This document shows positions 54,038-63,589 of a DNA stretch of 64,000 nt, one piece after another. The notes beneath the pieces are model-generated. The model saw only the letters and a program-made list of their open reading frames with translations. It made no database searches and was not told the origin of the DNA. Location of the stretch: positions 1-64,000 of the IMG/VR virus record IMGVR_UViG_3300042350_004191; one strand, written 5' to 3'. The position numbers and the translations under genes are program-made. Each line of letters begins with the position of its first letter. Position 1 is the stretch's first letter.

Positions 54038-54376
54038 ATGGCTTATAACATTAGTCCACATATAACAGGCGATACATGGGAAGGTATTTCTAGCATAACT
54101 TTCTTAAAAAATAATTCTGCTATAAATTTAACCGATACTTATATAGAAATGAAAGTAAGACTGTCCTTAGATAGTCCTGTTGTTTTTACTTTATCAACTC
54201 CAACCAGTTCTGGGATTACTATAACAAATCCCGCAAGTGGAATGATAAGAATTTTACCCACAAAAGTTGATATTCCGGTGGGAGATTACAAATGGAATAT
54301 TAAAATGACTTTCCCAAATGGTACTAAAAAAACTTATTTGATGGGTAATTGGCCTATTGTATCCGATCTACCCTAA
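54038..54376 (+). CDS. BppU-N-like Ig-fold adaptor protein
   Basis: [19 protein letters not shown] and YLMG pattern; coupled to the fibre gene. Confidence 0.6.
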
Positions 54377-57015
54377 TGAATGATGACGTAACAATTAATA
54401 TATCACCATCTGACGTAGACAATATTATTATAAATCCGTCTACGCCTTCAGATGGTGCTGTTATTAATTTAGATCCATCGACTACTGATAATGTAATAAT
54501 AAACCCAACAGTAATACCTGACTCGACAAATGTAAATTTACAATCGGGTTCTACTGGTCCTACTGGACCTGTTGGTAATACAGGCAATACTGGTACAACC
54601 GGACCTACAGGCGTTGGTGCTACAGGCCCTGCTGGAAAAATGGGTCCTACTGGAAGAACAGGTCCTACAGGAATTGGTATTACAGGTGCTACTGGTCAAA
54701 CTGGCTTTACTGGACCAACTGGAATTACAGGTTCTACGGGTTCTACTGGACCAACTGGAATTACAGGTTCTACGGGTTCTACTGGACCAACTGGAATTAC
54801 AGGTTCTACGGGTTTTACTGGACCAACGGGTTCTAGTGGTTTAACAGGTGCTACTGGGCCAACTGGTGGTAGATATAATACAACATCAAACACACTATTA
54901 ACGATAACTACTGGTGAAACTTACCTTTTAGTCGAATCTGGTTTATCCTATAGTTCAGGACAATCTGTTGTTATAGCATTTTTTAGTAATCCTTCATTTA
55001 AAATGGAAGGTGTTGTCACAAGTTATGAAGATAATAGTCTTTATGTAACTGTAACAAAAACATTTGGTAATGGTACTTTCTCAAATTGGTTAGTCAATTT
55101 ATCGGGACCTTTCGGACAAACGGGGTTTACAGGACAGACAGGTGCTACCGGATCTACAGGATTAACTGGTGCAACAGGATTAACTGGTAATACGGGACGA
55201 ACTGGAGCAACTGGTGTAACTGGTCCAACAGGAGTTATTGGTCAAACTGGTTTCACTGGTTCTACTGGTTTTACTGGTGCAACTGGTATAACTGGTCAGA
55301 CTGGTTTTACTGGTTTTACAGGTCCAACAGGATCAACCGGAAACACTGGTGCAACTGGATCTACAGGTCCAACAGGATCAACTGGTGTAACTGGCGAAAC
55401 TGGTGTTACTGGAGAAACTGGTTTTACTGGTGTTACTGGTGTTACTGGATTGACAGGATTAACTGGTACAACTGGTGCTACTGGTCAAACTGGTTTGACA
55501 GGCGCAACAGGTCAAACTGGTTTGACAGGCGCAACAGGTCAAACTGGTTTGACAGGTACTGCTGGATTGACAGGCGCAACAGGGCAAACTGGTGTTACAG
55601 GTGCTACTGGTCTAACAGGAACGACTGGTTTGACAGGAGCAACTGGTGTATCTGGTCAAACTGGATTCACAGGATCTACTGGTCAAACTGGTTCTACAGG
55701 TCAAACTGGTTCTACAGGTCAAACTGGTTTTACTGGTTCAACAGGACAAACAGGTGCTACAGGTCAAACAGGTGCTACAGGACAAACAGGTGCTACAGGT
55801 CAAACTGGTTTGACAGGATTTACAGGTGCTACTGGTCCAGATTTTGTTTTTACTACAAATTTGACAGCTTCATTTGCTGCATCTAAAAGTTTTGGAAAGT
55901 ATTTAAATGGAGATATAATTCCAGCTATTGGAAAAACACCAGCAGAAATAATACAATTAGCTTTAGTAGAACCGTTGGCTCCTGAATTAGCATTAAGTTC
56001 CTCAACAACTATACCATTTAACCAAAGTATAATAAACAATACTATAAATGTATCTCATGTCATAAAAAGTTTAGGAGGATTTGTTGCTACTGCAACTTTA
56101 GAATGGAGAAGAAATAATACTGGGTCTTGGATTTTGTTATCTAACAACACTACTTCGAGCTATACATTTATCCATAATTTAACAGACCCAGAACCATTTT
56201 CAGGTGCCACAAATGTTAACGGTACAGACGTAAAGCCTTTCAATTATCGTTATACAGTTACAGATAATATTGGAGGAACAAACACAGCTTTATTAAACAT
56301 AACTCCCCAAAGTTATGTAGCTCCTTCATTTTCATATTCGGTTGTTGGTACTAATATAGTTTCTCCAGAATCGAACCTTGAAAGAGAACGAGGTAATGTT
56401 AGTACAAATATATCAGGTTCAATTACAAGACAAAGCGCACTTGTAAATCTTGTAAGTTATCAACTTCAATATCAAGTAAATGGTGGTCCATGGTTAGATT
56501 TAGGAGCAACAATTAATACAGGACAGGCAAGTGCTACTATTCCTTTAACAAACCATAATCCTATTTCTGATAATACTGCAAGTACGATAGCATATAGAGT
56601 TGTTTATAGAGATACGTACCAAGTGTATAGAAATGCTTCATTAATATCTGCTGTAAACACCATAAATTATAGATTAATGATTTTTCATGGTCATAGATCT
56701 TCTGTACCATCAACATCCACAGATGTCAGAACATTAACCGCAACTGGTGCAAGGTTGTTTGTTACTGGTTCAAATCCTTTTATATTAAACAGTGGAAATA
56801 CTAATAGATTTTTTGTTGCAGCAATGCCTAATACTAATTCTATATCATTGGTTACAGATTTAGATGCTTTGGGGGCGAATATAACCAATAATTATATTAA
56901 TAACCCATTTAATGTTAATGATGCTGGTGGTAATTCTGTCTTGTATAAAGTTTATACAATGGAAATTGCAGGACCATATTCTAGTAATCATAGACATCAA
57001 ATAACAAGAACATAA
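54376..57015 (+). CDS. Collagen-like (G-X-T) fibre protein A (start re-called at 54376)
   Basis: Long GxT tracts, one beta-domain insert, and a C-terminal region paralogous to the next gene. Confidence 0.85.
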
Positions 57016-57016
57016 T

Positions 57017-61213: not shown

Positions 61214-61217
61214 TATT

Positions 61218-62921
61218 ATGCCAGCACCAGACGGATTAGGATTACCATACGGAATAAAGCCAGTACAGGCTGTAGCAGTCGATGCTTGGTCTGGACCTTA
61301 TACCGGAAACGATTTATCTTCTGCATTAGCCGAAGCTAATAACTCTATTAATGCAGCTATTCGTTTTAAATCAATGGAAGTTAGGTTGATTGTAAATGGT
61401 GTATCCAGAAAATTTTGGTATCGTGACGGAATTGGTAATAATGATCTTGTTGAATTTGTAGGTTTAACCGGACCAACAGGTGCTACAGGTGCTGGACAAA
61501 CAGGTGCTACAGGACAAACAGGTGCTACTGGACAAACAGGAGCTACTGGAGCAACAGGTTCTACTGGTGCTACAGGTTTAACAGGTTCTACTGGAGCTAC
61601 TGGACAAACAGGAGCTACTGGTGCTACAGGTTTAACAGGTTCTACTGGAGCTACTGGACGAACAGGAGCTACTGGAGCAACAGGTTCTACTGGTGCTACA
61701 GGTTTAACAGGTTCTACTGGTTTGACTGGATCTACTGGAGCTACTGGACAAACAGGGGCTACTGGACCTGCGGGTACACCTATAGACGTTATACCAACAG
61801 TAACAAATTATCTTTCTACAAATAATGTACAAATTTTAGATTTGAGTGTTAGCGGTCAAATACTCTCTGGAAATAATGTGGAACTATCTAATATTTTTTC
61901 AAATACTAAATACCTCTTCAATGATAATAATCCATCTGATAACACCCAAAGATTTATATATTACGGAAACGGTTATCAAAGTATAAATGAACTAGGTGGT
62001 CTTGATGGTTCTTATTATTTTGATGCTCCTTGGACTAGGTGGTTTATAAATTTAGGCAACGGTCCTATATCTGGCACTAATTACGATAGTTTTTTTGAAA
62101 TATATGTTTATCCGAATGAAATTAAAAAAATAAACTATAATGGAACTTCTTATTCTGTACTAGAATCATACAATTTAAGCAATTCCCAACAAATAGCTGT
62201 AAAAGTTAATACACTTGAACAAAACTTAAGTTCATTGGCAGATCCTCCAAATTATATTCAACCAAGTGCTACATTAACTAATTTTAGTGGAACACCATTT
62301 GAAGTTGGACAAACAGTTACACAAACATTAACTTTAGATTGGACTCAAGGAAGTGCTGGTAGTTTTACAACAGGCACATTTTCTAGAAATGGTTCGGTTA
62401 TATTAACCAATACTGTTTTACCTTCAACATATAATGTTAATGAAATTACAGGAACATCCTCAATAACATATAGAAATACTGTCAATTATAATCAAGGTCC
62501 TATATTGAACAATTCATTAGGATATCCCGATCCTACTGGAAGAATTGCTGCTGGTTCTAAATTTATTGAAGTATCTCATCGCGGTTATTATAAAATGTTT
62601 TTTGGTAGTGTTCCAACTGGACAAATACCAGCAAACCTTAGAAATTTACCAAGTAATAAATTTGATTTAGCTGGTGCTTCTGGTTCAATAGCACCAACAG
62701 AATTTGGGACGATAAGTGCAGTAAACATTGTATTTGTTTTACCAACACCAAGAGTATTAACTTCTGTAATAACAGATTCAAACGAGGATCTTACTTCAAG
62801 TTTTACACTTTCACCAACATCCATAACCTTACCAAATGGATCTACATACTCCTATAATTATTACAGACTAACAACAGTTATTCCTTTGGGAATACCGTTT
62901 AGAACAATTACCTACGCATGA
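61218..62921 (+). CDS. Collagen-like fibre protein C
   Basis: N-terminal domain paralogous to fibre B; GxT tract. Confidence 0.85.
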
Positions 62922-63589
62922 GTTATCCTTTTCCAACATTTCCATTAGTTAAAAGAGTTGGCTTAACCACAGCCGCATCTAATGTTGATGCGCGTTATGG
63001 TCCATGGTTATCTATTAATGATGCATTAACATCATTCAATGCTGGCCTTAGATCAAAAGGTTTGACTGTTGGTATATACACGCCAAATGATAACATAAAC
63101 AGTCCTGTAATAGAATACTGGTGGAAGAGTGGTATAACAGATAATGATTTAATCTTAAAACAGCCTGAAGAAACCAATCAAGGTAAGATTAAAATTTTAT
63201 CTAATAATGAATTTACATTAAGTGCCAGTTCTTTTTCTTCGTTTTTTAAATCAGTTACAAGTTCAAACGATTTTACTTTTTCAAATTTTTTATCAGGTGC
63301 TTCCATAACATTATATGTTTCTGCAAATCATGTAGGTTATTTTAGACATTATGTTCCACAAACGTCTTTTATAGGAAATGCGGGTGAAGGTAATACATTT
63401 TTTACATTTGAAAACAAAATTACAAAATTAACATTACAAAATGTTGGGGATTATTATATAGGTTTAGCTGATCCTGTTTCTTATGATGTTGTTCAAGTAA
63501 CCGCTCCTACGGGTGATAGTATACTTCTAGATGCTTATATTGGTTATCTTAAACTAGAAAATGGATACTATATACTTTTAGACCAGTAA
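62918..63589 (+). CDS. Fibre-associated protein D
   Basis: N-terminal VDARYGPW...[11 protein letters not shown] related to the N-termini of B and C. Confidence 0.7.

Follow-up and report, generated by a model that had tools for sequence, protein, structure and literature searches.

A domain pair straddling gene boundaries is a candidate joint between collagen-type fibre proteins of an uncultured phage

How are the products of neighbouring fibre genes of a phage joined to each other? This question is raised by four genes, here named A, B, C and D, which lie at the end of a stretch of 64,000 nucleotides (nt) of virus DNA. The stretch (the window) represents the first 64 kb of the 210,586 bp IMG/VR virus record IMGVR_UViG_3300042350_004191, which has a completeness rating of 99%. 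A C-terminal subdomain (T) of three of the encoded proteins is followed, across the gene boundary, by an N-terminal domain (N) of the next protein. Docking of T to the N domain of the next gene's product is in our opinion the best explanation for this arrangement and moderately probable, whereby we infer the binding from the conservation of both domains as a pair.

The four genes adjoin each other on the plus strand and are located 3' of a portal gene and a gene of 112 amino acids (aa). Gene A (54376..57015, 879 aa, P0001) has no N domain. It carries an N-terminus of its own (residues 1-57), followed by collagen repeats with one insert and a C-terminal module, here named X, of which T is the last part. 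Gene B (57017..61213, 1398 aa, P0002) starts with an N domain of the subtype N1, continues with collagen repeats containing six globular modules and ends with X. In gene C (61218..62921, 567 aa, P0003) an N1 domain (61218-61469) is followed by a collagen run, a middle part other than X and, terminally, a divergent T. Gene D (62918..63589, 223 aa, P0004) consists of an N domain of another subtype (D-type N, 62918-63184) and a C-terminal part of ~130 aa, and lacks T. Collagen (PF01391) was found above the Pfam cut-off in A (E 1.2e-49), B (E 1.1e-47) and C (E 1.3e-14), the longest runs of G-X-Y triplets being 82, 21 and 32, respectively. In D neither collagen nor any other Pfam family was found (E <= 0.01). 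A peptidase S74-type C-terminal chaperone was not detected in A, B and C, for which Pfam gave the collagen family only. Presumably, A to D are collagen-type fibre proteins which form trimers.

The module X comprises the C-terminal 395-400 aa common to A and B, with an identity of 54% (BLASTP, E 3e-146). It covers residues 485-879 of A (55828..57012) and residues 1004-1398 of B (60026..61210). The preliminary description of the window had claimed paralogous C-terminal domains of ~390 aa for A and B and a more distant version for C. This is correct for A and B, but in C homology is confined to the last ~105 aa (residues 454-557); the C-terminal 378 aa of C did not match the C-terminus of A by BLASTP (E 0.35). 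The part shared by all three proteins is T. A jackhmmer profile begun from the last 125 residues of A reached C with an E-value of 2.6e-17. Furthermore, an hhalign comparison of 64 X tails with 11 homologues of C, based on independent alignments, resulted in a probability of 97.8% (E 8.7e-13, 100 columns). According to profile search and structural model, T of A, the proposed socket, spans residues 754-879 (56635..57012). Within X of B it is located at 60833-61210, and the divergent form of C, named T_Y, comprises residues 454-567 (62577..62918).

The structure of X predicted by AlphaFold reached a mean predicted local distance difference test score (pLDDT) of 95.2 and a predicted template modelling score (pTM) of 0.79. 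A short helix-bearing start is followed by two FN3/Ig-like sandwiches (residues ~48-162 and 164-282 of the module) and by the beta-rich T (277-395). Fold searches with this model yielded FN3 matches with Z-scores of 8-9.7 across residues 48-282; these were generic FN3/Ig matches, and T alone was hardly covered by the searches. T in an ESM Atlas model was matched by viral hypothetical proteins with template modelling scores of 0.83-0.85. No Pfam family corresponded to X, the PDB sequence search gave a single weak Ig-like match (9d7z, E 5e-4), and tblastn of the X module of A against the GenBank phage collection gave no match. In total, more than 150 homologues of X were found, and in 122 of 123 homologues the module reaches the C-terminus of the protein.

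The N domain comprises the first ~80-84 aa common to B and C (55% identity, E 6e-31). D aligned to the N domains of both B and C with 30% identity (E 3e-7 and 7e-7), and a profile search over the 210 kb genome detected no N domain in A. The paralogy of the N-termini of B, C and D and its absence from A, both noted before, are hereby confirmed, with D as a divergent subtype distinct from N1. In B the N1 domain, the proposed plug, spans residues 1-84 (57017..57268). The monomer model of N (pLDDT 82.6) shows a small alpha/beta domain behind an extended arm of 20 residues without regular secondary structure. This arm (GLQLP[FY]GIQPVNPVPVD) is the best conserved stretch of the whole X|N unit. A segment which is conserved and nevertheless unstructured in the monomer model is typical of segments that fold on a partner.

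Searching 1.84 billion proteins with the N profile resulted in 1136 cluster representatives (E <= 1e-3). Among the best 150 of these the domain was located at residues 1 to ~85 in every case, with protein sizes ranging from 65 to 2261 aa. At the thresholds applied, N matched no Pfam family and nothing credible in a PDB sequence search. Foldseek found nothing, and the Z-scores of VIA-align (at most 4.1) stayed under the noise level stated for this tool. We make no claim of a new fold for N or X. In the GenBank phage collection tblastn found no match for N of B, nor did megablast of the region; for N of D matches were found in crAss002 and cr107_1 only.

Across the 210 kb genome exactly three T (A, B and C) and three N (B, C and D) were present, interleaved as T|N, T|N, T|N. 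At the first junction (57013..57019) the stop codon of A is separated by 1 nt from the ATG of B, and at the second (61211..61220) 4 nt lie between the stop codon of B and the ATG of C. At the third junction (62918..62921) the stop codon of C overlaps the start of D by 4 nt in the sequence ATGA. In each case T forms the extreme C-terminus, the following gene lies on the same strand no more than 17 nt away, and its product begins with N at residue 1. The straddling unit of C-domain, stop codon and following N-domain, postulated before to occur three times, is indeed found three times, twice as the full X|N1 (A|B and B|C) and once as T_Y|N_D (C|D). The ends of A and B, including the stop codon and the bases ahead of the following start, share 19 identical nt (57000-57018 and 61198-61216), which read AATAACAAGAACATAATAT. 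Outside of these 19 nt, the two X|N units are 47-76% identical at the DNA level.

Since adjacency in other phages had been proposed as a check of the pairing, we compared viral loci retrieved by N (79 loci) and by X (66 loci). In tallies that take in redundant loci, 104 T genes were followed by an N gene and 7 were not, and 105 N genes carried T directly 5' while 31 did not. In the close N subfamily (L012-L068) an X gene was present directly upstream in every locus, on the same strand and with a gap of at most 17 nt. Conversely, among loci retrieved by X, those in which X ends with a tail of the type PYSxxHRHxxTRx carried an N gene next to it wherever there was room downstream. A subfamily of X-like proteins with the tail AFTNxxLxxS (L132-L141 and L146-L155) had no N gene downstream. 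Some of these proteins themselves begin with a weak N-like domain.

After removal of redundancy, other uncultured phages yielded 61 distinct pairs of X and N, which fell into 41 clusters when grouped at 70% identity of X. Within these pairs X was always last in its protein and N always first in the next, 1-17 nt downstream. A fusion of T and N within one protein was not found among the best 150 N representatives and 123 X homologues. The X genes of the 61 pairs ranged in size from 251 to 1398 aa and the complete N genes from 170 to 1398 aa, and some N genes exceeded 2000 aa and left the contig. Like B, about 25 distinct proteins in the databases start with N and end with T.

The regions flanking the unit were extremely heterogeneous. 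When units with an X identity below 60% were compared, the parts before X aligned in only 16 of 1378 comparisons and the parts after N in 13 of 1770, so that about 99% of the cross-lineage comparisons showed unrelated flanks. For X and N themselves an alignment was obtained in every case, with a median identity of 43% and 55%, respectively. The starts of the X proteins fell into dozens of unrelated classes, including an Mtd_N-type start and several widespread unnamed motifs. Because these starts are so varied, a site on the virion is a less likely constant partner of N than X/T. Moreover, a conserved far end combined with a variable near end is the reverse of the usual situation, and is expected if the far end serves as a connector and not as receptor-binding tip. 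Apart from a near-identical contig, none of the genes near the unit were shared with the phage studied here; one locus carried a weak homologue of its 1567 aa gene. To judge from these comparisons, T and N are passed on together, as a unit that spans the gene boundary.

The divergent junction C|D provides a further comparison. Homologues of C were overlapped at their stop codon by the next gene by 4 nt at 4 of 4 places found. In two contigs available with DNA (L160 and L161) the gene after a C-type T begins with a D-type N (MSYPF.TFPL..R.G...DARYGPW), in L161 even though the start of the carrier is unrelated to that of C. The independent contig L160 repeats the chain of four genes, namely an X gene, a gene with N and X, a gene with N and T_Y and a D-like gene. 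Additionally, L010 and L011 carry a third type of T, and the start behind it, MGDFIFPLQFKRQF, is a third N-like one; this resemblance was noticed only on visual inspection and through weak profile scores. Divergent T tails are accompanied by divergent N arms, and the subtypes of T and N evidently co-vary. On the whole the proposed check by adjacency strongly supports the idea of a docking pair: T and N are neighbours in every locus of the close subfamily with room for both, unrelated flanks surround them, and their subtypes change together.

In the docking model that we favour, T, located distally on one fibre, would form a non-covalent contact with N, located proximally on the protein encoded by the following gene. 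In this way an exchangeable distal protein would be borne by a carrier whose start is specific to the phage. With X/T as the connector it is the N proteins that would carry the variable distal parts. For the phage studied here this would mean three joints, two of the cognate kind T_X|N1 (A|B and B|C) and one of a second cognate kind, T_Y|N_D (C|D), and a fibre of up to four segments. A, which lacks N, would be the first of them; B, having both domains, could be a middle link; and D, lacking T, the last segment or a cap. A stoichiometry of three T to three N, the order of the segments and the site of the fibre on the virion are those parts of the model that we deduce. The threefold use of the joint and its repetition in a second contig suggest that the fibre can grow in length by duplication of the joint.

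Several observations speak against the docking model. Second and third N genes without a T of their own occur after a single X gene (X->N->N->N in L120, and alike in L092). In the redundant set 31 of 136 N genes lacked an upstream T, being either divergent subtypes or additional N genes in tandem, and at most of the distant N loci a detectable T was missing. The X genes of L156 and L158 begin with an N domain of the subtype N2 (MAINLSDNI...) with no T upstream. The identity matrices of X and N were correlated with a Spearman coefficient of only 0.43, which linkage alone would yield as well and which we therefore do not count as co-evolution. Furthermore, the conservation of gene order among related phages and the redundant contigs add to the adjacency counts. 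Finally, N of B shared 59% identity with that of the second gene of L160, and N of C 48% with that of the third, compared to 55% and 65% between the paralogues within each genome. Positional orthology of the N domains between both phages was thus not found, and position-specific pairing at joints 1 and 2 as well as a fixed order A-B-C are not supported. The strict order A-B-C-D of the preliminary description is not supported for this reason and in view of the phages with two or three N genes per X. The same description regarded independent occurrence of the two domains elsewhere as evidence against docking. Such occurrence exists for divergent or tandem N genes without T and for the X-like subfamily without N, but within the close subfamily the domains are always paired. 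The assumed anchor, a BppU-like adaptor, was not found: neither Pfam nor PHROGs listed a BppU family for A-D, the portal gene and the upstream genes of 112, 1567 and 323 aa, and PHROGs, the only collection used here for the downstream genes, listed none for these.

Some of these points would be explained if binding of T to N takes place with every N1 protein fitting every T_X socket, so that A and B each bear B or C and the fibres are mixed or branched. The lack of positional orthology, which applies to N1 as well as X, and the two or three N genes behind one X gene in L092 and L120 fit this idea. Besides, the X model consists of a string of independent beta-sandwich domains predicted with high scores, so that the chains of a trimer could splay. 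However, L160 keeps the order X -> N..X -> N..T_Y -> N_D, T_Y|N_D represents a distinct cognate pair, and T and N are equal in number in this genome. Promiscuous or branched assembly is hence a possible variant of T-N docking, and the main one, although we judge it rather unlikely to be what this phage does. Alternatively, B, C and D could each be anchored separately to the virion via N as a shared attachment domain, while X/T is distal on the neighbouring fibre and the adjacency an inherited gene order. N genes without upstream T would then be no surprise. Fibre protein gp22 of crAss001 docks in the tail hub by its N-terminal residues 1-26 (PMC10172136), and the N model weakly resembles particle-binding N-terminal domains of tailspikes and fibres (7chu, Z 4.1; 6eu4, Z 3.3; 7xyc, Z 2.9), with all values under the noise level. 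Against such parallel anchoring, flanks and X starts are unrelated across lineages and N is still 55% identical, and a virion site conserved to that degree in such different phages is improbable; the conserved far end X together with a variable near end would also be odd unless X is a connector. We consider it unlikely.

A role of the downstream N protein as chaperone or as small tip adhesin for the X fibre, comparable to Tfa or gp38 of T4, appears improbable to us. Some N proteins are indeed small (170-250 aa; L023, L033, L020), and fibre chaperones are usually encoded just 3' of the fibre gene (PMC9608196). Most N proteins are long, however, reaching more than 2000 aa, and many of them including B and C carry collagen repeats. 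Pfam detected no chaperone family of the Tfa type in B, C or D, and binding between T and N is needed under this explanation as well. The least probable explanation, which we hardly believe, is that the junction is kept as a patch of homology for swapping distal fibre parts, without any contact between the proteins. It could account for the identical 19 nt around junctions 1 and 2 and for the extreme mosaicism on both sides of the unit. But conservation is seen at the protein level, with 40-60% aa identity across loci and the low DNA identity mentioned above even within one genome, and the conserved block of ~480 aa extends well beyond what a homology patch needs. Another possibility is that X binds the capsid, in the manner of T4 Hoc, a protein with a capsid-binding C-terminal domain; this would leave the constant N partner unexplained.

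Judged from the neighbouring genes, the fibre cluster is located in the head/neck module. The portal gene upstream (52048..53973, plus strand) is of the T4 gp20 type (Pfam Portal_T4, E 1.6e-95; phrog_213, E 8e-100). Between portal gene and A lies the gene of 112 aa (54038..54376, plus strand) which matched phrog_1084 (E 6.9e-14) and no Pfam family, and to which no function was assigned. The gene of 1567 aa located 5' of this pair matched no PHROGs family, and in Pfam only a sub-threshold VWA domain. Downstream of the window three further fibre-like genes are followed by genes for a head-tail adaptor, a head-closure protein, a prohead protease, a scaffold and the major capsid protein. The baseplate wedge gene of the phage is located at ~75 kb (75127-76935). 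In three other phages the unit adjoins head-closure, adaptor or terminase genes. Taken together, the gene positions hint at neck fibres. In T4 the gene for fibritin, which forms neck fibres, has a comparable position. Judged from the diverse N-termini of the carriers, however, the unit seems to serve at different attachment sites.

A globular module of ~88 aa (G[DS]RY.T...FG.G[TS]..W) interrupts the collagen of B six times, about every 138 residues (57422-59960, residues 136-912). A single copy was found in A (54865-55128, residues 164-251). The copies across both proteins were 26-67% identical, and internal duplication of this module has apparently enlarged the B segment. Two of the further fibre-like genes, P0012 (230 aa, 63602-64000 of the window and running on to position 64294 of the genome) and P0014 (264 aa, including a short stretch of collagen repeats; genome 65753-66547, L006:2753-3544), share a C-terminal domain of ~170 aa (38% identity, E 2e-27). 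A gene of 410 aa between them matched the C-terminal part of PHROG families described as baseplate wedge subunit. E-like genes come after the D-like genes in L160 and L161, too. Beyond the window three more collagen-like genes were found on the minus strand (genome 105858-107921, 110213-111682 and 111689-112927), ~30 kb past the baseplate wedge gene. Neither N nor T was detected in them by profile scan, and they may be the tail fibres proper.

Elsewhere in the window, an 18 kb stretch (13900-32400) had a higher GC content (0.40-0.47) than the regions on either side (0.29-0.34) and contained few long open reading frames (ORFs) under translation table 11. No tandem repeats were found in this stretch, and Rfam gave one tRNA-Cys only. 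Stop-codon recoding was considered for the ORF-poor region of 14-32 kb and rejected, since no single stop codon read as sense opens the stretch. A transfer-messenger RNA was present at 683-1144 on the minus strand (Rfam, 143 bits) with the tag peptide ADEEMLLAA. The phage carries eight tRNA genes, which are located in the window at 1268-1340, 9859-10171, 23028-23099 and 32368-32722 (minus strand).

Fibres built from several proteins are well known, for instance from T4, CBA120, RaK2 and crAss001. The long tail fibre of T4 (gp34-gp35-gp36-gp37) resembles our proposal in being a serial fibre encoded by neighbouring genes. Its hinge protein gp35 is monomeric. In contrast to T4, the shafts here consist of collagen repeats, and a single domain pair recurs as the proposed joint, three times in this phage and about a hundred times elsewhere. 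T4 fibre families were not found for A-D, neither in Pfam nor among the best 25 of 36-38 PHROG families; within the same PHROG range the matches of A-C were mainly due to collagen stretches and carried generic 'tail fiber' descriptions. In T4 the proximal fibre protein is located at the particle and the distal one binds the receptor (PMC5537660; PMC10253068).

The fibres and spikes of CBA120 (TSP1-4), RaK2 (gp526-534), phiKp24 and KP32-type phages are encoded by adjacent genes as well and assemble via conserved docking domains, while their receptor-binding parts are swapped (PMC10253068; PMC9700779). Conserved docking parts, variable receptor parts and adjacent genes are common to these systems and the one described here, in which docking is the proposed part. 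However, the docking domain of the CBA120/RaK2 type (T4 gp10-like XD, anchor) is found N-terminally in an organiser protein and gives rise to side branches, whereas the socket proposed here is located at the extreme C-terminus of the carrier and would form end-to-end joints. Neither gp10-like domains nor another named docking family were matched by sequence (Pfam, PHROGs) or by the fold searches, of which those with X hardly covered T alone. In crAss001, further fibre proteins are borne by gp22, which itself docks through its 26 N-terminal residues (PMC10172136), but the partner of gp22 is the tail hub and not the end of a fibre as proposed here. A chain-like fibre made of more than one protein is also described for the Pseudomonas phage A1002 (PMC13730344). 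It differs in that dimers of two fibre proteins are arranged side by side along a nozzle-rope protein and not as trimeric collagen segments end to end.

A possible trace of the joint is found in crAss002. Its gp19 (L162, MN917146.1 16349-20780) begins with a D-type N, with 46% identity to residues 22-82 of D and an E-value of 1e-12 with the N profile. The preceding gp18 ends 1 nt before gp19 and carries a weak T-like stretch at its end (E 7e-4). Unlike the fibre genes studied here, gp19 is annotated as 'phosphatase'. The T|N joint may thus extend to the Crassvirales. New in comparison with the known multi-protein fibres would be a previously undescribed domain pair that joins fibre proteins end to end and is conserved as a unit across the gene boundary.

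A more far-reaching idea, which we regard as speculative and rather doubtful, is that T|N serves as a portable standard connector across lineages. By adding X/T to its own anchor a phage could bear N-started fibres of unrelated phages, and B-like links could be concatenated, possibly with themselves, so that length and composition would be set at assembly instead of by a single gene; A would then be the initiator and D the cap, while C would change over to a second type of socket.

The joints of the known multi-protein fibres are specific for their lineages and were mostly found by structure determination, while the proposed T|N joint can be read from the sequence alone. The pair marks the end of one fibre protein and the start of the next, and it is kept over dozens of lineages while the anchor and receptor sides change. 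If the docking is real, fibre genes of metagenomes could be assigned by rule to a common fibre, and the sites at which host-range modules are exchanged could be mapped. The pair would then also offer a natural connector that could be tried for placing foreign distal fibres on laboratory phages.

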